Shown one piece after another: positions 9,348-57,364 of a DNA stretch of 64,000 bases (positions within the stretch are counted from its first letter, which is position 1; every line of letters begins with the position of its first letter). Source of the stretch: Andalucia godoyi And28 (taxonomy: Eukaryota > Protista > Jakobida); assembly GCA_009859145.1 (NCBI GenBank), contig VRVR01000024.1, positions 56,896-120,895 on the forward strand. Reading direction: 5' to 3'. The position numbers were made by a program, and so were the translations under genes. The notes beneath the pieces were generated by a model. That model was not told the DNA's origin. It saw only the letters and a list, made by a program, of their open reading frames with translations, and ran no database searches.

Positions 9348-9423
9348 TTCCAACCAATCCCGGTCTTCTCTTCTACACAATCGGTAAAAAAGAAGAACGC
9401 TGAAATAAAGAAATGCATTATCA

Positions 9424-9459
9424 GAAGAAGAAGAAGAAGAAGAAGAAGAAGAAGAAGAA
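9424..9459. repeat. (AGA)n microsatellite upstream of DDX52
   Basis: Perfect trinucleotide run. Confidence 0.9.
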
Positions 9460-9809
9460 AATGAAAGAAACGAAAAACCAAAAATCCGCACATAATTACG
9501 AGTAATACAATAACAAAAAATTAAAAAGACAAAGTCCATCAAAGAGCGAAATACGATGACATGAGTCTGTCAGTCTGTCCATAGAGTACTTCACTCTCCA
9601 ATCGATGTGTTTTGTCTGTCCTCGGTTTTTTTATTATTATTATTAATATTAAATTTATTACTTTTTAATTAATCGATTTTTATTTGTTTATAATTTGTTT
9701 TTGTTTTTCTTATTGCATGTTCTGCGTGGCATACTCGCGCCGCTTGCCGTTGTTTGTCGCCCGTAGTTGTTTTTTCGCTAGTAGTCCAAAATCTGTTTCC
9801 GGTCGCAAG

Positions 9810-10961
9810 ATGCCTCCCAAGTCTGCTGTTGTGGAAGAGAAGATCGCGCTTGGTCGTGTAGGTTCGAATCTTCAAGTTGGGATTGTTGGTGTTCCAAACG
9901 TTGGAAAGTCCTCTACCTTCAATCTGTTGACTCGCCAGAGTGTGCCTGCAGAGAACTACCCGTTCTGCACGATTGATCCCAACCATGCGCGAGTCATTGT
10001 GCCCGATGCGCGCTTTGACAAGCTGGTGGAAAAGTACAAGCCCGCCAGCGCTGTTCCTGCGTTCTTGCAAGTCACAGATATTGCTGGTCTCGTGAAGGGT
10101 GCGTCGGAGGGTGCGGGTCTTGGAAATGCATTCCTCTCTCACATCCGCGCAACCGATGCCATCTTCCAGATCGTGCGCTGCTTTGAAGATGCAGATGTCA
10201 CCCATGTCGAAGGCGGCGTGGATCCAGTCCGCGATCTCGAGATTATCTCTAACGAGCTTAGGCTGAAGGATCTTGAATTCTTGACAAAACAGCTCGAGCA
10301 GCTTACGTCCAAGCGCAACCGAGGCCCCGCCGACAAGGAGCACGAGCACATGGTGGACCTTACAAAGAGATTGGTGGAGGTTTTGGAAGCCGGAAAGGAC
10401 ATTCGCTTTGGAGAGTGGAAGAATGCAGATATTGAGCTGTTGAACACTATGCAATTGCTGACTGCAAAGCCCGTTCTGTACATTGCAAACATGTCCGCGG
10501 AAGACTACGAACGCAAGAAGAACAAGTGGCTTGCCAAGGTCAAGAAGTGGATCGACGACCACTGCCCAGGCGAGCAGCTCGTTCCGTACTCTGTCAAGCA
10601 TGAAACTGCGTTGCTGGATCAGGGGAAGATCGAGGGTTCGCAACTCGAAAAGATCATCACCACCGGATACCATCTGTTGAACCTGGCGCATTTCTTCACT
10701 GCAGGGGAAGACGAGGTCAAGGCATGGACCATCCAGAAGGGCACGAAGGCTCCGCAGGCTGCAGGGAAGATCCACACCGATTTCGAACGCGGCTTTATCT
10801 GCGCCGAAGTGTGCAAATTCGAGGATCTCATGGAACATGGCTCCGAAGCAGCTTGCAGAGCCGCTGGAAAGTACAGGCAGCAGGGTCGCGAATACGTTGT
10901 TGCAGACGGAGACATTATCCTTTTCCGATTTAACGTCACTAAGGATGCAAAGAAGAAGTAA
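9810..10961 (+). CDS. OLA1: Obg-like ATPase 1 (OLA1/YchF)
   Basis: MPPK start, [43 protein letters not shown]-terminal TGS domain ([18 protein letters not shown]). Confidence 0.96.
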
Positions 10962-16807: not shown

Positions 16808-17219
16808 CTTCTTTTTCCTTCCTCCGTTTTCTTTCCCCCCGCACCGTTCACACTTCACAGCAGTACACACGAGTACAAACCTTTTGAATCCTTATCAAAA
16901 TATGAATGTCAGAAAGAAGAAAGAAGAAGAAGAAAAAAGAAGAAACAGAAGAAAAAGGAAATAAGAGTCGAGCAACGAGCAGCGGACAGAGTGGGGGAAA
17001 GCTCTTTTTCGACAATCATTGATTTTTATTTCTTTTGGGTTCTCAGCTCGAGTACAAAACACAGATCGTTACATACATGTATAAAAGCAAGAGGGAGACA
17101 TGCATAACATCGAAAAACAAGACAAGAAAAAACCACACACACAAACATTAGCAACAACAAAAGGGGAAAATGAGGACCCCGAGACTATACAACACAAGAG
17201 ACGTAGACTTGGAATTGGA

Positions 17220-17665: not shown

Positions 17666-20134
17666 CTAGGATCGAATGGCGTCCATCAAGACTTGGCGCT
17701 CTTCATCGTCGCTGAGTTCGTCGAAAACGGCATCCTGACCATGGCATCGTCTGCCGATCCGCTGTCCGTCGTCGAGAACAATGATGTCATCGTCCTCGAT
17801 CGCTTCCGGGTCTGCATCTCCTGCTTCACGAGACACGTCCTCCTCTGCTGCCTCGCCGCTGCAATATCTCGAAGATGCATGAGTGGAAGCAGAGAGGCTG
17901 CGACGGACGGACACTTTGGAACCCGAAAAAGAAGACGACGATGACGACTGCCGGGCTGTAACGGAACCGGAGGTGGCGGCAAGCCGGGGAGCCTCCGATG
18001 ACACCGCCTGGTCTCCTCCAGCCTGAGAATGGTGTTTTGCAGACTTGGTTGTATGGACTGGCGGGCGCGCGTGCGATAAGAGAAGATTCTGGCTGCTCTT
18101 ATGCGTCCGGGAAGCCAAGTTGAAAGAAGACGTCCCTGCAAGCTTTGCAAACGACGCCATGAGAAGCTCTTCCTGGCGAAGCTTCGTCAGCAGCCTCTCC
18201 TGATGTTCCTTCTGGCGTTTCTGGTGATTCACTTCCTGGCGCTCCAACATTTCACGGCGCTCGTCCCACTTTGATGTTACAATGCGCGGTGCCGCCAATC
18301 GAGAAACCATTTGCGAGAACTCCTGCTCCGTCTTTGGAGGCGGGACAGCTCGAGTGGCTGGAGCAGAAGACGGCTTCCGATGAATGAGGCTGGACGGAGC
18401 TCGCCGAACCACAAACGCGGTGTCTTCTCCAAACTCCTCACCGTCGCTGGCCTCCCGAACCACATCATCACCATCGTCGTCGCCGTCGTCGTCGTCGTAG
18501 CTCTTACCATTGCGATTGTCTTTGTCATCTTCATCGTTATCACATTCGAAGTCGTCATCATAATGTTGCGCAGCCGTTATCCTATCACTGTCCCCGGCGT
18601 GCGAATATCGATCTGGGCTCTCCACGGATCCAGGTGTTGGCTTTGGCTTTGGCTGCGGCTGCGGTCGCGAAACGTGCGCAGACAACGATCGCTTGGAGGA
18701 CGATACCCTTGACGAAGATGCGTGTCCGTGGCGACGAGAACTCTGACTCAAAGCGGACGCACCAGAGGTCCTGGGTCTTTGAGATTCGGCCAAGTGATGA
18801 TCAGAAGCAGCCAGTGCCGATTCCTCTTCGTTGACCTTTTCTGACGCACACGACAACATCCGCGGACCGCACACTTTGCAGACCTTGAACGTTTTGTAAA
18901 GAAACGCCTGCTGATTTCGCAACTTGAGATAACGATCCAACGTCAGCGCCGGCTGGACTCGTTTTAGAACTGCAGGTACAACAAGGACAGGACCCTTCTT
19001 GCTCATCCCCATGGCCCTTTCCTCTTCTTCCTCGCTCCCCGAGGTAGGAACAGAAAACGGCCGTGGCACATCCTTTTGCTGCTGCGCATCCGAACTCTGA
19101 ATTGCCATCTTGTAAGTAATGTCGTAGATAAAGTCTGACTGAGGAAACAATTGATTGCAGCTCGGGCACAGATCAAAACCTCTGGAAGGCGCATCCGCAT
19201 CCGTATTGCCTGACGATGCGGGAAGGAATGGTTGGCTGATGATACCTTTCGGCGGGCGGATGGAGCGAAATGCGTCCACTGGAATCGTCATCCGGGGTCG
19301 GGCCGTTGGCTGCACGGCGGACGAATAATGGTGATCTGCCCCAAGTGGCTTTGAAGCGTATACAGGGACCGTTTCCAGATTGGAACACCAAAGAAAATGC
19401 AGCTGATCCAGCTCGTCAAACTTGAAAAAGCACTCCATCTTGCGGACTGTCCAGATTTCCCCTGCTGTCATCGCAATATGGCGTGCAATTTCTGCACAAA
19501 CACCCTGAATTCGCCCAACGAGAGACGGAGACGTCATTGGGGAGTCCAGCGCAAGATGGGAGGCGCCCTCAAACGTCACTACTCGATCATACATGTGTGC
19601 GTGACGGTCCGACAACCGATTTAAATTTACCTTTCGCTCGATTACGCAAAGAGACGGGCTCCAAGACGCCTGAATAAGACTATTGGATCCGCCTTTTGGA
19701 TCAACGAAAGCCTGCAGAATCCCTGATTTTCGAGCCTCCTTCGTTGCAACGAACTGATTGTGTACAAATTCGCGGAGACTGTTCTTGTCGAAATACTCCA
19801 TCACAATCACGACTTCTCCAGCACTGCTTATTTCGTCAGACAGGTAATATGCAACGACTTCCGACACGTGGTTGTGCTTCAGAAATGTCTGGCAAATGGT
19901 ATCCTCTGTAACATTCCATCGATTCTTTCGAAGCAGCGACCGACCGTCTTTCGCAGACGTAAAGTACCATTGTGGCGGCTGCCGGTCGAAAAAAAGCACC
20001 GTTTCTGGAATCTTGCACGACTGAAACGCTTTTCCGCCGCCTTGGTCACGCCACAGCAACGAATACACCGAGTCCACACCAAGAGTGCAGAGACCGAGAT
20101 GCGGTTTGCAGAACGCACATGCAGAATGTGACAT
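17666..20134 (-). CDS. Conserved-looking hypothetical protist protein (about 822 aa)
   Basis: Ordered N-terminal domain (KIPETVLF...WYFTS, GILQAFVDPKG, VTFEG, LHFLWCS), two CxxC pairs (CPSC, CKVC) and a disordered C-terminal half; ATG at 20134. Confidence 0.75.
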   Translation of the reverse strand: MSHSACAFCKPHLGLCTLGVDSVYSLLWRDQGGGKAFQSCKIPETVLFFDRQPPQWYFTSAKDGRSLLRKNRWNVTEDTICQTFLKHNHVSEVVAYYLSDEISSAGEVVIVMEYFDKNSLREFVHNQFVATKEARKSGILQAFVDPKGGSNSLIQASWSPSLCVIERKVNLNRLSDRHAHMYDRVVTFEGASHLALDSPMTSPSLVGRIQGVCAEIARHIAMTAGEIWTVRKMECFFKFDELDQLHFLWCSNLETVPVYASKPLGADHHYSSAVQPTARPRMTIPVDAFRSIRPPKGIISQPFLPASSGNTDADAPSRGFDLCPSCNQLFPQSDFIYDITYKMAIQSSDAQQQKDVPRPFSVPTSGSEEEEERAMGMSKKGPVLVVPAVLKRVQPALTLDRYLKLRNQQAFLYKTFKVCKVCGPRMLSCASEKVNEEESALAASDHHLAESQRPRTSGASALSQSSRRHGHASSSRVSSSKRSLSAHVSRPQPQPKPKPTPGSVESPDRYSHAGDSDRITAAQHYDDDFECDNDEDDKDNRNGKSYDDDDGDDDGDDVVREASDGEEFGEDTAFVVRRAPSSLIHRKPSSAPATRAVPPPKTEQEFSQMVSRLAAPRIVTSKWDERREMLERQEVNHQKRQKEHQERLLTKLRQEELLMASFAKLAGTSSFNLASRTHKSSQNLLLSHARPPVHTTKSAKHHSQAGGDQAVSSEAPRLAATSGSVTARQSSSSSSFSGSKVSVRRSLSASTHASSRYCSGEAAEEDVSREAGDADPEAIEDDDIIVLDDGQRIGRRCHGQDAVFDELSDDEERQVLMDAIRS

Positions 20135-20197
20135 TTTCCGAAACGCACACACACACACACTCACTCACACTCACTCACTCACTCACGCACGCACGCA

Positions 20198-41195: not shown

Positions 41196-44100
41196 ATGTT
41201 TTGCCGAGCACGATTAGCATTCTGCGGTCAAAACCAGCAGCTCGTGAACCGTGTCGTCAGAAGGCTCCAGTCTTCCGCTTCGTCTCCAAAGTACTTTGTG
41301 ATTACTTCCAAAGGTACGGTTGGTCATTCCAAGGTACGTGGAGAGAAGGGGTCAAGAGTTGAGCCTGTACCTCCTCTTGCTGAGGTCTATGCGTCGTTTT
41401 TATCTCCGCAGGCTGCTTTGGATGTCAGTCGTCTGTTCCAGAAGTACTCTTTGTTCGTCCGGTGTCTTCCCGGTGACAGCGCAATTCACTTGGATTATGG
41501 GGTGTGTCGCTTTTTAGGTCTGAGCCCTTCCTCTACTTCGCGCATGGATCCTGCAGATGATTCTGATGCTTTGTGGCTCGGATTCATTAACGGTTTCGCG
41601 TCTCTTGGTGCAGAGAAAGTTTCGAGGTTTTTCCGATTTGCTTCCCCAGGAGCGAAAAGTTTGCCGTCTTCGTTTCGAAACGTCGGATGGATAAATAGAA
41701 CAACGAGAATAATGAATGTAATCTCTGTGCAGGCCCATAGTCTGGTAGAATTGTACCTGTATTCCAACCTGGTCCTCTGCAAACCATTCGATTGTTCGTT
41801 CGTTTTTTTGAGTCCAGAGGAGGCATCAAGACCTCCTTTGTCTGTGCTCTATGATTTCTGTGATTTCATCCCATATTTGACATTCGATTCCATTTCAAAG
41901 TTGGAAGCAGAAGGAATATATGAGCTCATTGAAAAGAAAGCATTTCCGGCCGTACACGATATGCCGCGCATGGGAAGAAGGACACGCGACTGTGTGAAGG
42001 AATTGGGCGTTGAATCTCCTTCCTTGTTGCTGCAACGGATGGAGGATGTTGGGTGCTTTGGCTTTGAAGACTTGATTATCCACATGCTTTCAAGAAAGGC
42101 TTCGCATATCGGTCGCTTTCTTTCAGAATTATATGATAAGTGTCTGACGATGATCAAATTGGTAGACGTTGTGGATCGCGTTAATCAGGCTGCGATGGTG
42201 GATTCTCAATACGTGTCGTTTCTTAATTATTTAGAAAAGCGTTGTGTATCTCCTTCAGGAGTTGTTTTGAAAGTTCCTTCCTTGGGTTGCGATGTCAAAC
42301 ACTTGACAAATAGTGAACGTGCGTACTGGTACCAACGCTTTATTCGGTTCGGATTGTGTGGATGGGATGTATCCGATCAACCAAATGTTGTTTCCTACAA
42401 GTGGACTGCGGACCAAGAACACGTGTTTACCAGTGTTATCAATTGCCTCAACTCCACTGCTTGTCAGCGATTTGTTGTCTCAGGAAGAGACGGGACAGGG
42501 AAACGAGAGGTCATGGACCGCATGATTGCTGCTGTCGTGCTCTCTGGACAGCAAGTTGTTGTCTTGTCTGCAACAAGCATTCGATGCAGAGAGCATGTCT
42601 TGCGCTTGAACGAGAGATTCCGAAAGTCCATTCCTGGCATCAGGATTGGGCATCTTAGTCGGCTGGCCCATTCTGAAGATCAGGAACAAACAAAGGCAGA
42701 TCTCCAGTCTGGTGAGCTTAATTTGCTGATCTCGACTCCGCTGTTGTTTCGCGACCCACAACATTCTTTTGAAAATTTAGGTTTACTGATTCTGGATGAA
42801 GAGCAAGGAATGAGTCTTGATCCAAAAGTCTACGGGGTTCCAGATCTAAAAGTCGGCGTGCGCTCCGTTTCTTTCACCTCACATCGTCTTTCAGGAGAAA
42901 GTTTGTCTTTAGTTCAACGGTTTTGCACCTATTTCGAGCTGAATGAACTAAGTTGCCCCTCTGCTGAAAGTATCCATGCTTATTCCAAGAATGTTCTTTC
43001 CATGTTGCGTCGGGAATGTGGCGAACCGTTCTTAACAATGTTGTTTCCGGAAGTCATGCCTGGTGACTATGAAGATTCCCCTCAGGACACCCACGGCCCT
43101 CAGCATAACGAACCCCTCCAGACATCCCCCATGCGGATCCATAGCCATTCTGAACATGTTGACTTGGTGTTAATGGATCGTTCTGATGACAATATTCGGA
43201 AGATTGTATTATCGGAGCCCACAGTTAGGGTTGTAGTTCCTTGTTCTCGTGTTTTGGCATCAGCCACGTCAAGATACAAGCGAATTTTTGCGGATCATAC
43301 ATCATTTCGGATCGTTTCCCCGGGATCCTTGACAATGGACAAGAATGAACGGGACTTCGCTGATTTTGCCAGGGGATGGGCACGACTTGCGATCACGCCA
43401 TCATTTCCTTCGTGGGTCGGGGCCACTCCGAAATGTCGATTGATCTTGATTGATTCTGGGGAGTCATTGTCCCCGATCACGTTCTCCCAGATTATTGAAT
43501 CAGTCGAATCAAGTAGACTGCAAGCATTCCGAGAGACCTTCGATCTTTTTGGGCCCTTAGGAAGCTCCGAACCGTTGCCAGCCAATATGACTCTCATCCG
43601 TGATGTTCTATCGTCTTGGAAACGAATTCATGAAGGTCCTGAAGGTGAAAAGTACTATCCAATTTCTCCATTTAATGTGATACGATCTCTCCTCATGAAG
43701 CCACAGATTGTGTTTCTCACGTCCTTCCAGGATGCTAAACAAGTAACAGCTATGCGGACCTATGCAAGCCTACTCGATGCGAACATGTATGGGCGTCATC
43801 ATGGAGATGTCGAAGCGACGGTCGTTGCTCATTTTCTTGGAACAGAGTATTTTCGACAATACCAAGCGGGAAGTGCAGTTTTTCTGGCCCTGCTTCCAGA
43901 AATGATACGTGAAGTCTTGCTAAAGCTGTCGTCATCGCCGGAAACAGTATCTTCTTTGCTTGCAAAATGTAGGTGGAGACTATTGGAAGTCTGGAATTCT
44001 GCTGGACAGAAAATGCCTGGTATAGGACTGAAGACAGAAAATAGAAAGATGGGATTTCATGGTCCTGAATCCGATGTCTCCGATTCCAATGCTGCTCTGC

Positions 44101-45416
44101 GATATTCTGCAGCTCTTCTGCATGATCTCGAAAGCTCCATTTCTGAGTCAGCAATGATTGAACAGAAACTGAGCTTTGAGCGTATCCGCAAAAAAGGTCT
44201 TTCCTCACCATTCAGCATTTTGTCCACATTGTTTGAACAGTTCAATGTTGTTCCAACGAGGCCATTCACAGATTTTGTAACGTCTGTTTTGCCCGATGCG
44301 TGGATGGCTCTTCGAAACAGTGGCAGAGGCGAAGAGTCAACGGACGACTCTAAAAACCAGACAACCCATGAAGTTCCTACAGTCGACGTGAACGCCAGAA
44401 TATGTATGTCTGCTCTCGCCGGCCCTGCAATTGTGGAATTTGCTCCGTCGTCATTTTCATGTAGGCTGTCTCCTGTCTATGTTCCCAACCCGCTGATTCG
44501 ATTGGGTTTGTACAACAAGGTGTTTGAAAAGGAGCGATGTGCGGATCTTGCAGTTCTTCACGAAGTATCTCGATTGCTACACGCCGAGTTTGGCCCACTC
44601 GACGAATCTGCTTGTGTGTTGTTGAATTTTGCGCTGCTGGGTGCGTTGGCAGAGGCTGTCGGATTACAGCGTGTTGTGATTGGTAATGATTATGTTTTGT
44701 ACAAACCGAATTTCGTTCGGGAGTCACTCTCTTCTGACTTGTACGACGATGTGTCCTTGAGGCGTCCAGGAGGGGATATGAAGCCCGGTGATAGTTTTGC
44801 GGAATCTGAATATGGAAAGGACGATACGAAAAAAAGTCTCAAGACCAAGCGCAATCATAGTTCTTTGTTCGTCACCGTTTCTGAAAAATCGGAGATGTTT
44901 CACGCTTTTGACAACTCCATTTCTCGTACTTTGCCCATGTCTGGAACTGAAGTTGCGCACCCAGTTCCTCAGTCTATTCATCTGGATGTTCTTGTGAAAT
45001 CCCTTCGCCAGGTGCTTGAAGTGAAGGACGACAATTCCTGCCTGAGCGACTCTGTCGATTTCAGTTTCGCGTCTTCGGTTGCCCCGAACGACCCTTTTGA
45101 AATCGGTCAGCCCATCGACCAGGGTCCAACTGTGCGACTCGAAACATTTCCTCCGTTAATTGGAGGTGAAGATGCAGAAGCAGCCATGTTGAAAGCCACA
45201 CACGCCACGTTGCGTGAGAATGCCCTTCGAAATGGGAGCAGGACGATTTCTGCGTATTTCGATTATGCTAGTGGCGGATTTCGCGAACGCGTCTCATTTT
45301 CGGATGCTGGGACCGCGGTCCAGCATGTATTCTCTATTCTTGTGAAAGTTGGGGAGTTGGCAAACGTTCCTGTTGCTCAGTACTCTCTGTGGACTCCGGA
45401 ATCGAGGAATGTGTAA
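41196..45416 (+). CDS. mfd: Mfd/TRCF-like SF2 translocase homologue with a mitochondrial-type presequence and degenerate motor motifs (1406 aa)
   Basis: WTADQ, Walker A GRDGTGK (42483-42503), Mfd-like RIGHLSRL and FENLGLLILDEEQ (DEEQ at 42795), TRG-like region and TRCF-like YVPNPLIRLGLYNKV...EFGPL (about 44466-44700). N-terminus MFCRARLAF...RVVRRLQSS. Confidence 0.78.
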   Translation: MFCRARLAFCGQNQQLVNRVVRRLQSSASSPKYFVITSKGTVGHSKVRGEKGSRVEPVPPLAEVYASFLSPQAALDVSRLFQKYSLFVRCLPGDSAIHLDYGVCRFLGLSPSSTSRMDPADDSDALWLGFINGFASLGAEKVSRFFRFASPGAKSLPSSFRNVGWINRTTRIMNVISVQAHSLVELYLYSNLVLCKPFDCSFVFLSPEEASRPPLSVLYDFCDFIPYLTFDSISKLEAEGIYELIEKKAFPAVHDMPRMGRRTRDCVKELGVESPSLLLQRMEDVGCFGFEDLIIHMLSRKASHIGRFLSELYDKCLTMIKLVDVVDRVNQAAMVDSQYVSFLNYLEKRCVSPSGVVLKVPSLGCDVKHLTNSERAYWYQRFIRFGLCGWDVSDQPNVVSYKWTADQEHVFTSVINCLNSTACQRFVVSGRDGTGKREVMDRMIAAVVLSGQQVVVLSATSIRCREHVLRLNERFRKSIPGIRIGHLSRLAHSEDQEQTKADLQSGELNLLISTPLLFRDPQHSFENLGLLILDEEQGMSLDPKVYGVPDLKVGVRSVSFTSHRLSGESLSLVQRFCTYFELNELSCPSAESIHAYSKNVLSMLRRECGEPFLTMLFPEVMPGDYEDSPQDTHGPQHNEPLQTSPMRIHSHSEHVDLVLMDRSDDNIRKIVLSEPTVRVVVPCSRVLASATSRYKRIFADHTSFRIVSPGSLTMDKNERDFADFARGWARLAITPSFPSWVGATPKCRLILIDSGESLSPITFSQIIESVESSRLQAFRETFDLFGPLGSSEPLPANMTLIRDVLSSWKRIHEGPEGEKYYPISPFNVIRSLLMKPQIVFLTSFQDAKQVTAMRTYASLLDANMYGRHHGDVEATVVAHFLGTEYFRQYQAGSAVFLALLPEMIREVLLKLSSSPETVSSLLAKCRWRLLEVWNSAGQKMPGIGLKTENRKMGFHGPESDVSDSNAALRYSAALLHDLESSISESAMIEQKLSFERIRKKGLSSPFSILSTLFEQFNVVPTRPFTDFVTSVLPDAWMALRNSGRGEESTDDSKNQTTHEVPTVDVNARICMSALAGPAIVEFAPSSFSCRLSPVYVPNPLIRLGLYNKVFEKERCADLAVLHEVSRLLHAEFGPLDESACVLLNFALLGALAEAVGLQRVVIGNDYVLYKPNFVRESLSSDLYDDVSLRRPGGDMKPGDSFAESEYGKDDTKKSLKTKRNHSSLFVTVSEKSEMFHAFDNSISRTLPMSGTEVAHPVPQSIHLDVLVKSLRQVLEVKDDNSCLSDSVDFSFASSVAPNDPFEIGQPIDQGPTVRLETFPPLIGGEDAEAAMLKATHATLRENALRNGSRTISAYFDYASGGFRERVSFSDAGTAVQHVFSILVKVGELANVPVAQYSLWTPESRNV

Positions 45417-47347: not shown

Positions 47348-49034
47348 TTATTCCAGCTTTGTGGCAGAAACAATGTTAAATCGACGATACAAGATCACTC
47401 CCGCCATGGAGAATGCATGAGAAGCAACGAACGCACACAGTGGCAAAAGACACACGGCTGAGAAAAGTTGACCGCGAACTATCAAAGATCGGATGAACAT
47501 GTCCCATTGCCCAGTCACAAATGAAGTTCCGACGAGCAGAATGATATCGAAGCAAAATGCAAGATAGGAACTTAATTGCAACTCTGCAATTAAGTCAGGG
47601 GAAAAGATCATGGAAAAGAAGTAGGATGTCAAGAATGACGCAACCATGTGGAATACACTAAAAATCTGCAGGATTCGCTGAGAAGCCAAAGCAAACGGTG
47701 CAGCCAAACATGTGAATCCGAGAACGACCAACCAAAACAGTACGGAGGGCAGCACACCCTTGAGAAGCAAACCGATTTTGTTAGACGGAACACTTAGGCC
47801 ACCGTCCACAGCCGCAGCTGTTAGAAACAATGTCCAAGGAATCACGGCAAGCGAAGAAAAACGGAATGCCAAGAGCAAAGCCGAAGAACAGAGCAAGATT
47901 GCAATCAAGAGAAATCTCAAGATGAACCGGGAATACTTTGGCACGTGTACAAGAGATGAGAGAGCGAGATCGATTCCGAGAAAGAAGCAGAGAGATGACG
48001 TCCAAGTGATACCAGAGACGAACACATCGTTTCTTTCAAGGTCAATCTTTTCGCCAAATGCCAATAATGCTGAAATATAAAACGTCGATTCCAAATCAGT
48101 AGCAAACGCCGCTGTGTTGGCAGAAACATACGGGGAATCAACGCTGCCCCCAGAAGGTGCCAAACGCACACATGAGCGAATGTAGTCCAATGACTGTGAA
48201 GGGATGTTCATGTTTTCCGACAGCAGAATATACACGCCTTGCGCTGTGCTCAGACAATCTGTACCAACGAGATCCACAGCTGAATTGGAAGGACGAGGCG
48301 CAAAGCCCCCATCAAAACCGTAATGGAGCTCCAAGAAATTTAAAACGTAATCGCGCGGAGTAGGGCAAGAAAGTTTCAATGTTTTTCGAAGGTAATAAAA
48401 CCGCCAAGTATGCAGCAATGATGGAGTTTCAGATTGCCTGTTAAACACACCGCCACTTCGAACAGAAACCTTCGTCCCCAACGCATCGCACAGAGCTGCC
48501 TCTTCAATTTCACCGACCTGTGACAAATTGGAGAGGCTCATTACGACATAGAATACATCATCGAATGAAAAGGGCCATTCGAAATTCACAATCTTGAGAT
48601 ACTTCTTTTTGAGACCTTCGGGAATGTTCGCCGGAATCCTCGAACCAGTGTAACGAACCACGGATGTCCACAGGTAAGTATCTCGATCATTCAGGGACGT
48701 TGCAGACGGGAGTTGTTTGGCAAGAGTCTGCGTAAACTGCTCGCTGACCCCGGAGACATTCAGAGCCGACAACGCGCCGGCAACCACACCCGCATATTCT
48801 GTGAGGAGCGTGGAACAGTAAGTTAAAACGAAAGATATATATGCATAGAAACAGGAACATACGAAGATTGGGAGGAGGCAGAAAGAGTCTTATGCCTTTT
48901 TCTAGGTTGTGAACAAATGACAACGGATCCGGGTTGTAGAAGCGTGCATTGTACAGCACAATGGAAGCGAAAACTGCGGCTAAAGAGACTGACAAAAGCC
49001 GCCGATTTTCTAGAGCGCTTTTCGCTTTCGGCAT
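47348..49034 (-). CDS. Hypothetical multi-pass membrane protein with a luminal helical-repeat domain; intron 48862-48799
   Basis: Exon 1 (49034-48863) encodes an N-terminal signal/anchor. Splicing the GTATGT...CAG intron joins it in frame to the 479-aa ORF. The C-terminal half has about six hydrophobic segments. Confidence 0.72.
48799..48862 (-). other. Spliceosomal intron (64 nt)
   Basis: GTATGT donor, TTTAAC branch-like site, CTCACAG acceptor; phase 1 on both sides. Confidence 0.8.
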
Positions 49035-50870: not shown

Positions 50871-51145
50871 CAACGGTACACTGCCGTACGAGTTTTTGCC
50901 AGTTGTAGAGGCCATCTTTCCCTGTTTGGGAACTTGGAGGGGGGAATTGGAAAGGCTTTTCTTTTTTTTGAGGGCCTCCTCCCCACCCCTCCCCCCTTCT
51001 TTCTGTTTGTCGTTCCCTTCCTTCATTTCGAACGCCATAATTATAGTACAGAAATCAAGATATTTCCTTCAATCGTTCCAATCTTCGACTTGACACGCAT
51101 TGCTGCGGGACGTTGATATCGAATCCTTCATTTTGTTGGGAAAGA

Positions 51146-54100
51146 ATGAACGACGACGACGATTCTGTCTGGCTTGTCACACCGGATTCCTCTCGTGCGT
51201 CGTCCCCGGTTGATGACACAAAGATGTTGGATGATCGACAGAAAGATTCCGCTCCCCGAAGGCTTGTTGGATATTCCGCTCCAAAAGACGTTGTGGAAGA
51301 CTGGGATAACGATTTCTTGATTGAGAAGAGCTTGAAAGAACCCGAAGACGACGATAGGTCGTCCCTTGTGTTGTTTCTGAATGGCCCTCCGAGTTCTGCG
51401 CCGGGGATAATGTCCGATGGCAAGTCTTTGTTCTCGGACATCGTGTTCATCCTTACATCTTCGAGTTTTTCGAACAGACACACGGATTCTCAGGATTCTG
51501 ATGTTCTTTTTTCAAACTTTCTTGAAGAATGTGAAGATGATCCCAAATACACGGACCTGTCATGGACGCTGCCAATATATTTTGGTCACGAGTTTTCTTT
51601 TGCAGATAAGGATTATATTGAACCTGATGGGGAGAAAGCGGAATGGCAGTATGAGTTGGCGCGTGCTAGGTACGAAAAGGACGTTTCTTCTGGAGTGAAC
51701 AGAAGTGCTTTGTTTTCCGCAGTCGCAGAACTGCTGCGAACGAGGCGCGGCAGCGTTTGGAAAGAGATATCTTCCATACAAGGACTGTGTTCATGTGAAA
51801 GATCGTGGTCTCTTTGTCAGCATGTTGTATGGCTGCAGCACACTCACACTCAATGGGATGCCGATGCTTTTTCTGAAGCCGAGGCTTTGTTGCAGAATTG
51901 TTGCAGATGTCTTTTTCGGCCTGTATCGGAAAGAGAACTTCTTTTGGTGAAGCTGTGGCAAGCAGCAGTGACGAAGGATCGTGATATTCGCTCTTTGGAA
52001 TCATTATTGCAGCTGTTGAAGTCCTTCTTTGAGAATGTCAAAGACGTTCCTCCACAGGCAATTTTCTTCCAGTTTCCATTCTCTCCTCGGGTCTCCGGCA
52101 TCGCTGCGATATCTCTTTCAACGTTGTTTTTAGTCAGATTTGGAAGTGAATCCAAGGACAAGAGCGTCTCATCGGATGTTGTGCGGGCTTCTACTCGCAG
52201 TTTGTGCATTCGTCTTATCGAGTATGTGCACGAGGATCCGGTTTCCGTCTTCAGCTCGCTTGTCCGAAGAGTTGTCCTTGCCATTCACAGAGAATCGTTT
52301 CCTCTTGAGACGAGCGTGTCTTCTGTTGATGAAGAATTCAAAGAGGATGATTGGGATGTGTCTTCTGAGGAAATGCCAAACGATCGACCGTCTTTGTCTG
52401 CGCTGCTGAATGCTGTATTAACTGTCTCCGATGAGGACGACGTTTCCCGTGCGTGCACGAAAGACGGAAAGTCCAGAGATTTGGAGATCCAAGACGAGGA
52501 TTTTGTATGGAGTGATAGTAGACTCTGCCTTTTCCCTTCATTTTTGGACCCTTCCACCGTTTTTGGACAAGACAGCAGTCGCTGGATTGGGCAAAAGGAC
52601 AATTTTACTTCTACGCTCCCTTCTGTGAACATTCTTCGGATTCCTCGGCCTCCACATGCAGCACATTTGCGGAGTTTACGTCCTGCCAATTTCGAAAAGT
52701 TTCTTCGTTCATTTGCTCGGGTTCCGCCGTATGGTCAGTTAACGGATTCGCAGAAAGATCTGTTGGCAATGTCCTCCAGTGATTTGGAAGTTCAAAAAAT
52801 CGACATCAGGGTCAGAAGCGAGTTGTCGTATCTTGATACGTTTTCTCTTGAATGGGCTTCGTTCTTCATGGACGCTGCTAGGCTTTATGCGGCTCGTCGA
52901 AACCTCTACTTCCTTTCGAAGTTGCTGGATCTGTTTTTTGATTCCTGGATTGCATACAATGAGTCTGCAACTGGTGACGAGGATCATTTGTGGCAGATGT
53001 CAGTCCTGGGCGGTCATTTGTTGGAGGAATACGCCTCATTCGTTTTGCAATGGCCGACGGATGTTGCTGTCTCTTCTTCGAGTGGAGGAGGGCTTGACTT
53101 GTTGTCTGGAGTAATTGAGAAGTTGACTATATTATCAGACCGGCTATGCGTCATTATTCCTCTGCGGCCGTATTTCTTGCTAATGAAGGCACGGGTTATG
53201 GCTCACCAAGCCTTTAACGCTGCTGACACTGTGGTGGAAGACGTAGTTGCCATAATTATCGATGTTTTGCAGAACAGACTAGACGAGGATTTGAATGATA
53301 CTCAACTGCGACTGGAATATAGCTGTATTGCGGTTTCCGATTTGTGCATTCTTGCGTCCGGGCGATCTCCGTTGACGCTATGTTCTGCTTCCAGTACGAC
53401 GAGACCTGTTAGTAGTCGAAGATTTTCTACAGTAGTCTTACCAACCAGTGCATCGCCGCACAATTCTGCATCGTACGGGTCGTTTTCTGAAAGTTCGGAA
53501 ACTTCTGAAGAAGTTGCGGATTTCCTTGTCGCCCAAGCTCTTGAGTATTTTTCAAACTCTCGATGGGCTCAGGAGGAAAATCGACTGCGTTTTCTTCGTG
53601 ATTCTCTTCCACTTTTGCCTTCAGGTATCTGTCGTGCTCGCGTAGCGTTCGTTTTGTCGCTGTGTGCACCAACTTCTGCGTCGTCGGAGTCATACATCTT
53701 TGAGTCGACTGTGCTTTGTCACATTCTGTCCGTGGATGCCGCTGTAGAAGAAAGGAACAGAGAATTTTCTTTTTCTCCTAATGCAGATAGCGGAAAAACC
53801 TTCAGTTTTCAAGGAAGGTCAAGCGTTTACTCGAAGCTCGACTGTGGCGTGGATTTTGATGTGCCAACTTTCTCTCCTCTAGTTCCATTCCGATTCTTAA
53901 CCGCACCTTTGTATTCTCCATCATTTTTATCTGGCATCCTTCCTTTGTTCTGCAAGGTTCTTATGTCGTTTGGTGATAAGTATGTGTATGCTTCCGCTTT
54001 GTATGAATCTGTTTTGATAATGCGTGCACAGCTATTTGGTTCACGGCTGTCTTTTCCCAGTACACCGTCGCCGACGAATTCCGTGGTGTCTGTGGATCCT

Positions 54101-57100
54101 TTCCTTCCTGTTCCTGATTTGTCGAGTGTGACTGATCTCGAGACCGTCAACTTGATGAGAACTCTCGCAATGACTGCTTATGAACACCACGATTCCAGGC
54201 TCGCTTTGGAGTACTTCTGTCGCTTGTTAGCGTATGCCATTTCCAAGTCTCTCATGGCCGAATGTCTTTTCTTTTCCCAGTTAGCATCGGATATCGCCTT
54301 CAAACGCGGAGAGTTTAGTATTGCGCTTGATTGCCTGCGTTCTGCTCTCGCGTGCTTAATGCCGGAAGTGCCCGTTTCGCTTTTCCGGACAACTGACTCT
54401 GTTTTTCGACTGGACACCGCCATGAGTCAGTTGCACATCACACTGGCTGACGTGTTGTTTCACAGCTTTGACGGGTGTGAGAAGGGCATTGACCACTTGA
54501 AGCGGCTTCTGAAATGTGAGATTCCGAAGGCGAAGCGTCTTGCTGCGCACTTGAAGTTGGCAGGGTTTTATGTTTCCAGAAGGTGGTTTGCGATTGCAGG
54601 TCGAGTTCTCGAAGACGCATTTGACTCGACACTGGTCGTTGACGATTCCTTTTGCCGCTGCCTTTTTGATTTTGAAAAGGGGCGCGGAAATTTTGGACGC
54701 GCGTTTAGCTGGTGTCTTTTTGCACTCTCAAATTGCGCACCGTCGTCCTCCCATTCCGCTACGGCCATTTGGCATCTTCGCGCTGGTCAGTGCTTGTTGC
54801 AGTTTCGTAGCACTTCCGAGTTTGATTCTCTGTCGTTTTACGACAAGCAAATATTTGACCGATCATGCATGAATTTTATCCTGGAACAAGAACCGCTTTT
54901 TGCGAACGTGCTTTCTTTTCCAGACAGTCGCACAACGGTGGTGAAAGTTGCTATCAAGCATTTCCGCAGGTCGTATGATCTCTTTCGGGCTGTTGGGGAC
55001 GATTTAAAAGTTGCGAAAGCTGTTATGTTCATTGCCCGTGCGCAGCTGGAGTGTGTGCTGGACGACGTCATTTTCACAGGCTATTCAATCGAGTCTGCGG
55101 TTGAAAGGTTGGAGAGTGGATTTTCGTTCCGATTGAGTGTGCCAGATCTTGAAGAACCGTGTGTTCTTGCTCTTCGTGTTGGTGCAGACACGCTTGCCTA
55201 CCCGTTGTATCCATTATCCCTGTTGCTCATGTCGGAATGTCGATATGTGCAACGTCGATATCGTTCGAGTTTGCGATTCCTGCTGGTCTGCAAATCCTTT
55301 GTCCAGAGAATTTTCTTTTCCACGTCTGGAGTTTATTCGATGAGCAATTCTTTACCAAGTTTCCACGAAAAATTGAAGAGCATATATGACAGACTTATCC
55401 GGTCGATTTTGGGTCTTGTATCCGTATTTGGGAATGGCATTGTGGCATTTTTGAATTTTTCGCTTGTTCTAGATGAATATTCTTTGATTGAAGCTGCGTT
55501 GCACTCATCCAGACGCAAGCTCAGTGGAGAAGCGCCTTCCGATTTTGGTCCATCTGCTGCTGCTGCTGCTGCGCACCGTCGGACTGCTTCAAATGTGTCA
55601 AACGTCTCCAGTACGTCATCGGAAGTTTTTGACGATGAAAACACGGACTCTGATAGCTCAAGTATCCATTCGAACAATTACAAACCAACGCTTCGTCGGT
55701 TCCGCACTCTTCCTGAGCGGTTTGCTCCCGTGAAGAATTCTCTTGATGAGATGAAGCCGGACGAAAACGTGAACGCTGCCAACGATTTGCAAATCCGCGT
55801 CCGCGAACGTCTTTGGAGCGTATTTCAGCGGATGCGCGCTTACTGTCACGATTTTTCAGCTGGCTACATCGAAAAGGTAGAGCTTCGTCGCAAATTGGAT
55901 AGTGCATATGCGCGGTTAATTTCGTGGATTTCCGAACCGGATCAGCATCAAAGCTCAAGGACAGAGTTTTTGGATTCGTCCCATTCTGTTTCTCGAAAAC
56001 TTTTGCCTCTACAAGAGATATTCCGATCACCAGATACGGATCGATCCGTTGTGGCATCTCCTGTTCCTCGATTGCCTCCAAGAAGCTTGTTCGCCGTACT
56101 CCTCAATGACAATCTCTGTTTCATTTCAATGACTCCAGAGTTTGCGTTTCGCCGTTACCGAGTATCAGTTGACGTCTGCAACAAACTCCAATGGTCGTTT
56201 TCTGACTTCTCATTTAGTGCTGTTATTCCTGCGCCATTCCCAGAATTTTTGTTGAATTTGTTGTTGCAGGGACGGGAAGATCGGATACCAAGAGATGATG
56301 GTGGTGTCGAATGGGGTGTTCCGCATCCGACAGCGCTATTGTCATCTCTCTTGGGCATTCCGCTGCAATCGTTGGTGTGCGATGAATTCTGGTCCTCCGT
56401 GTTTGGTTTAGAAACAACCGAGTTTCCCATTGTCTCCCTGTCAAAGTTTCCGTGGAAGTTGCTGCCGTCTCTTTTTGCATCTTGGAAGTCTTCTCATACA
56501 ACCCCAATTTCGTTCATTTGCCTGTCTCGGAGTCTGCACCTTTTCCCATGGGAATCCGTGTTTGCTTGCTCTGTTGTTCGCTTCCTTGAGCTCACTGCAA
56601 TGCGCGTTTTTGACGCCTCTGCCGATTCTTTGCCTGCCGGGTCCATCCCTCGAGGGTCTAAGATTGGATATTCTACGGATGCATTCTCGTCCACTGAAGG
56701 AACGACTTCTTCTCGAGCTTCCACGTCTGTGTCATCAGCAACGGTGTCAACCACTCATTCGTCGGATACAATTATTTCCAACCTATCGTCAACGTCATCA
56801 TCATCCGACTCCGAAGCTTCTCGTCGAATGATGCCTTCTGTGTGCTTTTTGACGTTCGTTTTTGATGCTGAAGATGCCCGTTTCCGTGCTGCGTCTGACA
56901 TGAAGTTGAAGTCGTCGTTGATTCACGGAGATGTATCTGGCTTGAAAGTCGTTCCTTATATGAACAGCCTTGTCAAACCGGGAAAAGGTCTTTCAGCGTA
57001 CCGCAAGAAGTACAGATTGTTGAGATTCGAGCTGGTGGATCGGAACTTTCGTTCCGCGAAAATGTATGCAAATGCATCCGGAAGTGATGTCTGCATTGTA

Positions 57101-57364
57101 TTGTGCTCCTTTGCAGATTGGGTAGATCTCTGTCCGTTGTTGGCATCTCTTGTTCAAAGGCCGCCATTTTCGCTATGGTTTGTTCCCGATGCTCGCTTGA
57201 AGGACGTCATGGTGTTTGTTCATAGAATGGCAGACATTTTGGATTCAAACGTCTTGATGGACGTCGACAAGTTGTTGTTTTGCCATCATGTTCTTCTAAA
57301 ACGGCTGGGAATCCCGTCGATCTTGCTTCCGAATATTTCTTTACTTGAAAAGATGCAGTCGTGA
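51146..57364 (+). CDS. Very large hypothetical helical (TPR-like) protein with a possible CHAT/separase-like C-terminal region (about 2072 aa)
   Basis: Intronless ORF of more than 6 kb; TPR-like helices at about aa 1000-1300; LHLFPWES motif at 56534-56557; ATG at 51146. Confidence 0.75.
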   Translation: MNDDDDSVWLVTPDSSRASSPVDDTKMLDDRQKDSAPRRLVGYSAPKDVVEDWDNDFLIEKSLKEPEDDDRSSLVLFLNGPPSSAPGIMSDGKSLFSDIVFILTSSSFSNRHTDSQDSDVLFSNFLEECEDDPKYTDLSWTLPIYFGHEFSFADKDYIEPDGEKAEWQYELARARYEKDVSSGVNRSALFSAVAELLRTRRGSVWKEISSIQGLCSCERSWSLCQHVVWLQHTHTQWDADAFSEAEALLQNCCRCLFRPVSERELLLVKLWQAAVTKDRDIRSLESLLQLLKSFFENVKDVPPQAIFFQFPFSPRVSGIAAISLSTLFLVRFGSESKDKSVSSDVVRASTRSLCIRLIEYVHEDPVSVFSSLVRRVVLAIHRESFPLETSVSSVDEEFKEDDWDVSSEEMPNDRPSLSALLNAVLTVSDEDDVSRACTKDGKSRDLEIQDEDFVWSDSRLCLFPSFLDPSTVFGQDSSRWIGQKDNFTSTLPSVNILRIPRPPHAAHLRSLRPANFEKFLRSFARVPPYGQLTDSQKDLLAMSSSDLEVQKIDIRVRSELSYLDTFSLEWASFFMDAARLYAARRNLYFLSKLLDLFFDSWIAYNESATGDEDHLWQMSVLGGHLLEEYASFVLQWPTDVAVSSSSGGGLDLLSGVIEKLTILSDRLCVIIPLRPYFLLMKARVMAHQAFNAADTVVEDVVAIIIDVLQNRLDEDLNDTQLRLEYSCIAVSDLCILASGRSPLTLCSASSTTRPVSSRRFSTVVLPTSASPHNSASYGSFSESSETSEEVADFLVAQALEYFSNSRWAQEENRLRFLRDSLPLLPSGICRARVAFVLSLCAPTSASSESYIFESTVLCHILSVDAAVEERNREFSFSPNADSGKTFSFQGRSSVYSKLDCGVDFDVPTFSPLVPFRFLTAPLYSPSFLSGILPLFCKVLMSFGDKYVYASALYESVLIMRAQLFGSRLSFPSTPSPTNSVVSVDPFLPVPDLSSVTDLETVNLMRTLAMTAYEHHDSRLALEYFCRLLAYAISKSLMAECLFFSQLASDIAFKRGEFSIALDCLRSALACLMPEVPVSLFRTTDSVFRLDTAMSQLHITLADVLFHSFDGCEKGIDHLKRLLKCEIPKAKRLAAHLKLAGFYVSRRWFAIAGRVLEDAFDSTLVVDDSFCRCLFDFEKGRGNFGRAFSWCLFALSNCAPSSSHSATAIWHLRAGQCLLQFRSTSEFDSLSFYDKQIFDRSCMNFILEQEPLFANVLSFPDSRTTVVKVAIKHFRRSYDLFRAVGDDLKVAKAVMFIARAQLECVLDDVIFTGYSIESAVERLESGFSFRLSVPDLEEPCVLALRVGADTLAYPLYPLSLLLMSECRYVQRRYRSSLRFLLVCKSFVQRIFFSTSGVYSMSNSLPSFHEKLKSIYDRLIRSILGLVSVFGNGIVAFLNFSLVLDEYSLIEAALHSSRRKLSGEAPSDFGPSAAAAAAHRRTASNVSNVSSTSSEVFDDENTDSDSSSIHSNNYKPTLRRFRTLPERFAPVKNSLDEMKPDENVNAANDLQIRVRERLWSVFQRMRAYCHDFSAGYIEKVELRRKLDSAYARLISWISEPDQHQSSRTEFLDSSHSVSRKLLPLQEIFRSPDTDRSVVASPVPRLPPRSLFAVLLNDNLCFISMTPEFAFRRYRVSVDVCNKLQWSFSDFSFSAVIPAPFPEFLLNLLLQGREDRIPRDDGGVEWGVPHPTALLSSLLGIPLQSLVCDEFWSSVFGLETTEFPIVSLSKFPWKLLPSLFASWKSSHTTPISFICLSRSLHLFPWESVFACSVVRFLELTAMRVFDASADSLPAGSIPRGSKIGYSTDAFSSTEGTTSSRASTSVSSATVSTTHSSDTIISNLSSTSSSSDSEASRRMMPSVCFLTFVFDAEDARFRAASDMKLKSSLIHGDVSGLKVVPYMNSLVKPGKGLSAYRKKYRLLRFELVDRNFRSAKMYANASGSDVCIVLCSFADWVDLCPLLASLVQRPPFSLWFVPDARLKDVMVFVHRMADILDSNVLMDVDKLLFCHHVLLKRLGIPSILLPNISLLEKMQS

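Follow-up and report, generated by a model that had tools for sequence, protein, structure and literature searches.

The protein encoded at 41196..45416 (+) in a 64,000-nucleotide stretch of the genome of the jakobid Andalucia godoyi (the window, in whose numbering all positions are given) is, on the evidence of its sequence, a very divergent descendant of bacterial Mfd (TRCF) in which three colinear modules, RID plus relay helix, RecA1, and D7/TRCF, have been kept. Its motor is very probably disabled, and we consider it moderately probable that it serves as an Mfd-derived, RID-anchored, non-translocating partner of the mitochondrial bacterial-type RNA polymerase (RNAP). The locus lies on contig VRVR01000024.1 of assembly GCA_009859145.1, VRVR00000000 being the draft nuclear genome of A. 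godoyi (PMC7050145). The open reading frame (ORF) is uninterrupted, starts at the first ATG after a stop, and encodes 1406 amino acids (aa) plus a stop codon; its translation agrees in every residue with the published gene model ANDGO_08229.mRNA.1 (1406 aa, 0 introns) and, from the ORF list and the match to the published mitoproteome table, it constitutes the complete coding sequence of the Mfd-like protein ANDGO_08229. In that table, the protein is annotated solely as "DEAD-like helicase", under DNA metabolism, and Mfd or TRCF is absent from the main text of the genome paper, which mentions "several other helicases" for replication (PMC7050145). The Mfd nature of ANDGO_08229 is not recognised in the published annotation.

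Profile searches were conducted domain by domain, a whole-protein MAFFT alignment with bacterial Mfd having misaligned the N terminus owing to inserts. A profile of 10 bacterial Mfd sequences gives three colinear domain matches (whole-sequence E 8e-37), to RID and the relay helix at aa 89-195 (E 4e-8), to RecA1 at aa 400-537 (E 3e-27), and to D7 at aa 1088-1170 (E 8e-6). The hhalign probabilities for RID, RecA1, and D7 are 79, 98.8, and 71%, respectively, with the single sequence and 93.8, 99.5, and 93.9% with a profile of the two orthologues described below, and in a control with 2000 shuffles of the segments concerned the RID sub-profile scores 26.7 bits with the real sequence and at most 4.6 with shuffled ones, the corresponding values for D7 being 18.3 and at most 7.4. 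The NCBIfam mfd model (TIGR00580) matches RecA1 (aa 399-537) with 87.8 bits and E 6e-25, as compared with at most 47.5 bits (E 1.8e-12) for recG and a lower score for priA; with this coverage, the score does not reach the full-length equivalog level, for which the TIGR00580 cut-off is 800 bits. The best matches in the PDB are Mfd from Thermus thermophilus and Escherichia coli (3e-12, versus 3e-6 for RecG), accompanied by weak colinear RID and D7 segments. In Pfam, DEAD is matched at aa 421-540 (31.6 bits; cut-off 26) and TRCF at aa 1089-1166 (22.5 bits, E 1.5e-4); a PIF1-like match at aa 404-461, which overlaps that to DEAD, is sub-threshold (19.7 bits, cut-off 25.9). An earlier note on this DNA, made from the letters alone, had read the ORF as encoding an Mfd homologue, and that reading stands, since RID and TRCF are both detected and the resemblance goes beyond that of a generic RecG-like member of helicase superfamily 2 (SF2). 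The motifs that it quoted are all present in the order in which they occur in Mfd: WTADQ (aa 403-407), GRDGTGK (430-436), RIGHLSRL, LGLLILDEEQ (528-537), FTSH (560-563), TPSFPSW (734-740), QIIESVES (765-772), YVPNPLIRLGLYNKV, and EFGPL.

The RID forms a Tudor-like barrel at aa 89-150 (41460..41645, on the + strand like all parts of the gene), with the segments PGDSAIHLDYGVCRFLGL, SDALWLGFINGF, and VSRFFRF, and is identified by the Mfd profile, hhalign, the PDB, AlphaFold2 (AF2) modeling, and Foldseek. It scores 17.7-26.7 bits with the custom Mfd profile (E 4e-8 to 4e-7). A PDB search with the single RID sequence gave no match, but the two-sequence RID profile, searched against the whole PDB, retrieved one chain, 3mlq_E, which is the RID of Mfd crystallised with the β1 domain of RNAP. 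Two regions, aa 40-400 and aa 395-1200, were modeled with AF2, in both cases with bacterial Mfd in the alignment. In the first model, a five-strand barrel is followed by a long helix (aa 163-193), with predicted local distance difference test (pLDDT) values of 70-85, and Foldseek places the RID and relay helix of 13 Mfd chains first, followed by 6yhz (an isolated 76-residue Tudor-like domain), CdnL, CarD-β1 complexes, and the Tudor domains of UvrD/PcrA; most of these are RNAP-binding Tudor domains. The RID is also the best-conserved region between the two orthologues (49% identity), and the 12-residue run SDALWLGFINGF, which is identical in both, covers the predicted RID strands 3 and 4. Mfd binds β1 through strand 4 of its RID, and Tyr350 and Tyr362 of the T. 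thermophilus protein contact Ile108 of the β subunit (PMC3001067). We infer from the alignment that the invariant Phe130 and Phe134 of ANDGO_08229 correspond to these two aromatic contacts.

The relay helix follows at aa 160-197 (41673..41786; FRNVGWINRTTRIMNVISVQAHSLVELYLYSNLVLCKP); it aligns with the Mfd consensus LxGxxWxxxKAxxxxxIxxxAxxLxxLxAxR and is helical in the AF2 model. The presence of a RID was correctly anticipated in the earlier note and is borne out by profile, hhalign, and 3mlq_E, but it had been placed too far downstream, as the true barrel (aa ~89-150) lies ~70 residues upstream. The segment VGWINRTT...VELYLYSN, which had been taken for RID, is the relay helix that comes after it, and of two further segments ascribed to RID, RPPLSVL belongs to the post-relay linker and IGRFLSELYD to a lineage-specific insert of ~200 residues. 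Upstream of the barrel there are only 85 residues, and hhalign finds no match between the N-terminal residues and Mfd positions 1-430; the UvrB-homology module (D1a/D2/D1b), whose absence had been remarked on, and D3 are therefore absent. The beginning of the protein resembles a presequence, being basic and acid-free as first described: the N-terminal 40 residues contain 7 Arg/Lys and no Asp/Glu, and aa 1-30 (MFCRARLAFCGQNQQLVNRVVRRLQSSASS; 41196..41285), recognised by their composition, have a counterpart in the similar start, MLRYARPSILRLPCRRCAIFSRALS, of the orthologue.

The D7/TRCF domain (PF03461) occupies aa 1086-1172 (44451..44711; SFSCRLSPVYVPNPLIRLGLYNKVF...EFGPLDESACVLLNFALLGALAEAVGLQRVVIG) and is supported by the Pfam match, by hhalign, by the shuffle control, and by AF2 pLDDT values of 64-90, in agreement with the TRCF-like domain proposed previously. 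Between and beyond the three modules, ~600 residues of lineage-specific sequence have been gained in total. Insert 1 (aa 198-398; 41787..42389), delimited by alignments and modeled by AF2 as helical with low confidence, carries a conserved LSRKASHI motif; its ~200 residues occupy exactly the interval, ~16 residues long in bacterial Mfd, that separates the post-relay "F..F.Y" linker from the Q-motif of RecA1. The spacing between RecA2 and D7 is ~280 residues versus ~75 in bacterial Mfd, and opens with a conserved block (aa 786-935; 43551..44000) that contains LGTEYFRQYQAGS and KCRWRLLEVW, has 41% identity to the orthologue, and stands in the place of the TRG/hook region. The C-terminal tail of ~230 residues after D7 ends in another conserved block (aa 1306-1406; 45111..45413), with the motifs GPTVR, IGG..AE, and QHV and 34% identity to the orthologue, which is specific to the two-member family. 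No relative of these added parts (the inserts, the post-RecA2 region, and the C-terminal tail) was found in Pfam, the PDB, or the sequence database, although the word-index database search with the C-terminal block missed even the query proteins.

RecA1, which corresponds to D5 of Mfd, spans aa 399-545 (42390..42830) and includes WTADQ, GRDGTGKR, motif Ia (SATSIRCREH), motif Ib (ISTPLL), and motif II (LDEEQ); it is supported by Pfam DEAD, TIGR00580, the PDB, hhalign, and AF2 pLDDT values of 64-85. RecA1 retains its P-loop Gly and Lys residues, DEE in motif II, and motifs Ia and Ib, which contact DNA; motif Ia reads ATSIRCREH as compared with PTTVLAxQH in the bacterial consensus, and motif II reads DEEQ in both, with DEEP in the orthologue. 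The Walker A relic, Gly430-Arg-Asp-Gly-Thr-Gly-Lys436-Arg437 (42483..42506), has lost the Mg-coordinating Ser/Thr, as seen in the alignments: the bacterial consensus GDVGFGKT is represented by GRDGTGKR in A. godoyi and by GSLGTGKM in the orthologue. Beyond RecA1, hhalign identifies a motif III relic, VSFTSH (vs LTATPIPRT; nucleotides 42873-42884), followed by an insertion of ~70 residues between the RecA lobes (together 42831..43175), and then a relic of RecA2 (D6 of Mfd; 43176..43550), colinear within the long hhalign match, in which the register of the segments VRVVVP, FRIVSPGSL, FARGWARLAI, and CRLILID is kept. Motif III is TATP in the bacterial consensus, FTSH in A. godoyi, and FTSN in the orthologue; motif V, located in the hhalign alignment at TPSFPSWVG (43395-43421), has changed from TTIIESG to TPSFPSW and SVSFAPW, respectively, and motif VI (43488-43511) from QLRGRVGR to QIIESVES and GNLVKSME, with no arginine in the A. 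godoyi sequence. RecA2 searched alone gives E 0.0018 and a probability of 15%, and the AF2 confidence there is below 50; a HMMER sub-profile of bacterial D6 has no match in the A. godoyi protein, and Pfam Helicase_C (PF00271) has none in either orthologue. The signatures G.GK[TS] and [TS]ATP occur in all 73 full-length bacterial Mfd sequences and the TRG signature RG.G..LG..QSG in 72 of the 73, but none of the three is found in either of the two eukaryotic proteins. The degeneracy of motifs III, V, and VI had been described in the earlier note and is confirmed, being common to the orthologue; the damage to Walker A (GKT to GKR) is a further loss that had escaped it. A TRG-like segment had also been reported, but this has no statistical support: the Mfd TRG sub-profile has no match in the A. 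godoyi protein. A pairing by MAFFT of FLGTEYFRQYQAGS with LLGxEQSGH as a TRG was rejected, the key Arg and Gln being missing.

Mg2+ in P-loop/SF2 enzymes is bound by the hydroxyl of Walker A, and both hydrolysis and its coupling to translocation depend on the arginines of motif VI and on the Arg and Gln of TRG. With the Ser/Thr of Walker A, motifs III and V, the arginines of motif VI, and TRG all lost, the motor is very probably disabled, but nucleotide binding may persist, since the P-loop Lys and the DEE are conserved.

That these changes characterise a family is indicated by a second member. HMMER, run exhaustively against 1.84 billion cluster representatives, gave 3825 matches, of which the best 150 were examined; all of these 150 except the query and one other, P0012, match best in RecA1 only, and among them the family consists of the query and one other 50%-identity cluster, in a library drawn from ~15 billion proteins. 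P0012 is a 1001-residue fragment from JGI metagenome 3300042934 (contig L003, Ga0456364_0023113). Its full-length 90%-identity cluster mate, P0161, belongs to an environmental eukaryote, has 1805 residues, and is encoded on Logan contig L002 of SRR22388075 (5644 nucleotides, with little else on the contig). P0161 is colinear with the A. godoyi protein over its full length at 35% identity, which is distributed unevenly (RID 49%, RecA1 43%, the post-RecA2 block 41%, D7 41%, and the linkers 25-30%); it is 400 residues longer, most of the difference being due to larger linkers and to a long insert, acidic and of low complexity, that follows D7. In Pfam, P0161 matches TRCF with 30.1 bits (cut-off 25) and DEAD above its cut-off, and RID with E 5e-4, below the gathering score. 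It has every motor defect of the A. godoyi protein as well as a presequence-like N terminus. Because P0161 shares architecture, conserved blocks, and motor defects, the family is judged to be old and under purifying selection, with the degenerate motor as a stable state. In two metagenome scans, family-specific peptide patterns gave no match, and neither did a genome-contig scan with RecA1 alone; word-index homologue searches returned only the query and bacterial Mfd, but they missed P0012 and P0161 even when these were in the query alignment, so that such negatives carry little weight. On contig L003, a His_Phos_1 gene, a eukaryote-style neighbour, lies 158 nucleotides downstream on the same strand, a spacing that implies a compact genome; a His_Phos_1 neighbour was looked for in the A. 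godoyi window and none was found, there being no synteny with L003.

To our knowledge, jakobids are the only eukaryotes in which a bacterial-type α2ββ'σ polymerase transcribes the mitochondrial DNA (mtDNA), every other lineage having exchanged it for a phage-type enzyme. In bacteria, Mfd is a translocase that pushes a stalled polymerase forward and recruits UvrA through D2. The mtDNA of A. godoyi encodes rpoA, rpoB, rpoC, and rpoD, and a gene for a phage-type mitochondrial RNAP is absent from A. godoyi and from four other jakobid genomes (PMC7050145), which agrees with the setting in which the earlier note had placed this protein. The published targeting score for ANDGO_08229 is P=71, the mean of four predictors, in the "moderate/probable" class (PMC7050145); together with the character of the N terminus, this suggests that the protein is probably located in the mitochondrion. 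The bacterial-type RNAP is the sole mitochondrial transcriptase in A. godoyi, where the mtDNA-encoded RpoB is the only plausible ligand of the RID. In the mechanism that we propose, the RID would dock on the β1 domain of mitochondrial RpoB in the manner of bacterial Mfd and CarD, while the RecA1/RecA2 relic may have kept a grip on upstream DNA and perhaps also on a nucleotide. ANDGO_08229 would no longer be an ATP-driven translocase that recruits UvrA; both the binding to RpoB and the loss of activity are inferred. Its role would be that of a polymerase-bound regulatory or structural factor, more CarD-like than Mfd-like, with the new domains providing other contacts, and it might stabilise, mark, or help to dislodge paused or stalled complexes, or bridge RNAP to other mitochondrial factors. 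The retention of this Mfd relic would, on this proposal, be explained by the retention of the bacterial polymerase.

Several observations weigh against this interpretation. The Pfam scores of the A. godoyi protein are sub-threshold both for TRCF, where 22.5 bits compares with a cut-off of 25, and for RID (PF02559), to which there is a short match at aa 92-113 with E 0.08. Foldseek ranks Mfd first with both AF2 models, but this agreement is supportive and not independent, being partly circular because bacterial Mfd was in the AF2 alignments, and outside RID, RecA1, and D7 the models are of low confidence (mean pLDDT of 47.8 for aa 395-1200). At the presumptive interface, the "f-o-f-P" signature of the β-contacting strand is not kept (GFAS / GFKP vs LYVP), and the position equivalent to Leu499 of E. 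coli and Arg341 of T. thermophilus Mfd is Ser/Ala. The case for targeting is made by predictors, which assign the protein to the moderate class, and the co-occurrence of the family with a bacterial-type mitochondrial RNAP is seen in one species only. It should also be noted that the conserved elements include several, namely the relay helix, D7, the P-loop Lys, and the DEE, that serve or regulate an active motor in bacteria, and that some residual ATP binding or hydrolysis may therefore persist.

This last point leads to the most serious alternative, that ANDGO_08229 is a still-active, if unorthodox, ATP-dependent translocase that removes stalled or conflicting mitochondrial RNAP from mtDNA and terminates transcription without coupling to UvrABC. 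The absence of the UvrB module would not be an obstacle, as Mfd without it has precedents in Buchnera, Wigglesworthia, and plant chloroplasts, where UvrABC is missing; the two orthologues agree in the P-loop (GxxGxGK), in motifs Ia and Ib, and in DEE of motif II, RecA2 has kept its strand register, and the protein still has the relay helix and D7, by which the motor is regulated in bacteria. However, the residues that have been replaced are those with established roles, namely the Walker A hydroxyl (Ser/Thr to Arg, or Met in the orthologue), the motif VI arginines, of which neither orthologue has any, and the TRG Arg and Gln, which are needed for hydrolysis or its coupling; motif III (TATP) and motif V have been lost as well, there is no Helicase_C match, and the signatures concerned are present in 72-73 of 73 bacterial Mfd sequences. 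An active translocase appears rather unlikely.

An explanation without any link to RNAP, which we regard as improbable, is that the protein is helicase-like and acts in mtDNA replication, recombination, or repair, for example as a fork remodeller of the RecG/PriA type or as a nucleoid scaffold. It would accord with the published filing under DNA metabolism as a "DEAD-like helicase" and with the presence of RecA and other bacterial-type DNA enzymes in A. godoyi mitochondria (PMC7050145), and RecA1 does match the RecG and PriA profiles, but more weakly than Mfd (at most 47.5 versus 87.8 bits). The RID and D7, which are specific to Mfd, are present and conserved, neither the RecG wedge domain nor the PriA domain is detected by Pfam in either orthologue, and the protein lacks the catalytic residues on which a remodelling helicase would depend. 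An identity as RecG or PriA was rejected on the presence of RID and D7 and on the lower recG and priA scores. The supposition that ANDGO_08229 is a decaying or non-mitochondrial relic, either a recent bacterial transfer nearing loss or a protein that works elsewhere in the cell and has a fortuitously presequence-like N terminus, can draw on the heavy decay of the catalytic motifs, the large parts of the protein that have no recognisable fold, and the "moderate" targeting score, given 10-15% false positives among TargetP matches (PMC7050145), but is very improbable in view of the intact 4.2-kb ORF, whose base composition is in line with the rest of the window, of the full-length orthologue with 35% identity, the same architecture and blocks, and a similar N terminus, which implies long purifying selection, and of the long branch away from bacterial Mfd that the two proteins have in common (500/500 bootstraps), which excludes a recent transfer. 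A pseudogene was rejected as the ORF is intact and the orthologue conserved.

The ancestry of the RID-anchored polymerase partner that we favor was examined with Mfd from a scan of one genome per bacterial species, from which the 80 loci most similar to the query were used. Among those loci that carry a class name, 12 of the 13 best are from Alphaproteobacteria. In rank tests on modules that had played no part in the selection of the 80 loci, alphaproteobacterial Mfd scores higher than other bacterial Mfd with the A. godoyi RID (p 9.5e-4) and D7 (p 7.8e-4), and with the RID (p 9e-7), RecA1 (p 1.5e-4), and D7 (p 4e-3) of the orthologue. In a neighbour-joining tree from 356 columns of RID, RecA1, and D7, the eukaryotic pair forms a single clade in 500 of 500 bootstraps, and in the full-data tree this clade is the sister group of all 36 sequences from Alphaproteobacteria. 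The phylogeny with bacterial Mfd that had been called for establishes the monophyly of the family, but its alphaproteobacterial placement has a bootstrap value of 31%, and the set of 80 bacterial sequences had been chosen beforehand for their similarity, both of which weaken the case for such an origin. Descent from the Mfd of the alphaproteobacterial endosymbiont that gave rise to mitochondria is suggested by these comparisons, and in the proposed mechanism this ancestor would be the most likely source of the relic. A more extended scenario, which we put forward only tentatively, is that a remnant of the proto-mitochondrial transcription apparatus has been vertically inherited, moved to the nucleus, kept only in jakobids and a relative that never replaced the bacterial-type RNAP, and turned into an ATPase-dead, RID-anchored partner with new domains.

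Bacterial Mfd/TRCF (E. coli, 2EYQ and 6X26; T. thermophilus, 6M6A; TIGR00580) has the same order of RID, relay helix, RecA1 (D5), RecA2 (D6), and D7. In contrast to it, ANDGO_08229 lacks the UvrB-homology module (D1a/D2/D1b), D3, the Walker A Thr, motifs III, V, and VI, and TRG, and has in addition the ~200-residue insert before RecA1, the ~70-residue interlobe insert, the ~280-residue spacer between RecA2 and D7, the 230-residue C-terminal extension, and a predicted mitochondrial presequence. UvrABC is missing from Buchnera, Wigglesworthia, and Arabidopsis chloroplasts, and the Mfd proteins found there are without the UvrB module but have kept RID and D7 (PMC3488230). ANDGO_08229 is comparable with the chloroplast protein in having a nuclear gene, an organelle with a bacterial-type polymerase, and no UvrB-homology module. 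The truncated forms retain the hook, relay, and TRG, and a loss of motor motifs is not reported for them (PMC3488230), whereas ANDGO_08229 has lost the motor motifs and TRG, is predicted to be located in the mitochondrion, and has a suggestive alphaproteobacterial affinity. CarD and CdnL (4XAX, 4KBM, 2LQK) have the same Tudor fold as the RID and act on the β1 domain of RNAP without an ATPase, as is proposed here for ANDGO_08229. However, CarD, with ~160 residues and a helical DNA-contacting C-terminal domain, does not descend from a complete Mfd and possesses neither RecA lobes nor D7, unlike the 1406-residue ANDGO_08229; a CarD C-terminal domain was not detected by Pfam in either orthologue. 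RecG (1GM5; TIGR00643), a sister SF2 family that RecA1 of ANDGO_08229 matches at E 1.8e-12, has a wedge domain and TRG but no RID or D7, the opposite of the pattern seen here. A precedent is provided by the GreA/GreB homologue ANDGO_04888, a nucleus-encoded, divergent, mitochondrion-targeted accessory factor of RNAP in A. godoyi (PMC7050145), which belongs to an unrelated family and was already recognised in the genome paper.

In a narrow literature search, no mitochondrial Mfd was found, nor any mention of Mfd together with jakobids; within the scope of that search, ANDGO_08229, being probably mitochondrial, would be the first mitochondrial Mfd derivative to be found, and one with a degenerate motor. 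The GreA/GreB homologue was the sole reported nucleus-encoded factor of the A. godoyi bacterial-type RNAP, to which an Mfd derivative would add a second. The family also represents a natural experiment in which polymerase-binding and regulatory modules have long been under selection while motor residues were lost, and is relevant to current debates on the ATP-independent and the non-repair roles of Mfd; in addition, the protein could be a handle by which the mitochondrial transcription complex of jakobids might be isolated. If the endosymbiont-remnant scenario is true, the presence of the family across eukaryotes should track the type of mitochondrial polymerase, and it would be a second nuclear marker of the switch beside the GreA/GreB homologue. 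If the function proves mundane or the location wrong, what is left is the re-annotation of one gene in one protist genome.

The neighbouring ORFs in the window are ordinary eukaryotic genes, which encode a RasGAP, a kinesin, a P-type ATPase, a canonical poly(A) polymerase, a DEAD-box helicase, and a WW-domain protein. A kinetoplastid source, which the scarcity of introns in the ORFs had suggested, was rejected, as the contig belongs to A. godoyi. In the 813-residue DEAD-box helicase ORF at 7101-9542 (-), the Pfam DEAD match ends at profile position 71 (aa 226-290) and Helicase_C starts at aa 523, a gap that suggests that RecA1 is interrupted by a large insertion, or that an intron or frame change within it has gone unrecognised. 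A 2083-residue ORF at 51113-57364 (+) has no Pfam family and coincides with a strongly negative AT skew (approximately -0.2, from 52 to 62 kb). The ORFs at 47348-48787 (-), 14078-16870 (-), and 17666-20164 (-), of 479, 930, and 832 residues, respectively, are likewise without a Pfam match, the first resembling a multi-pass membrane protein in the long hydrophobic runs of its C-terminal half. The ORFs at 9669-10838 (-) and 9684-10961 (+), of ~390-425 residues, overlap almost completely in antisense, and at most one of them is likely to be a real gene.

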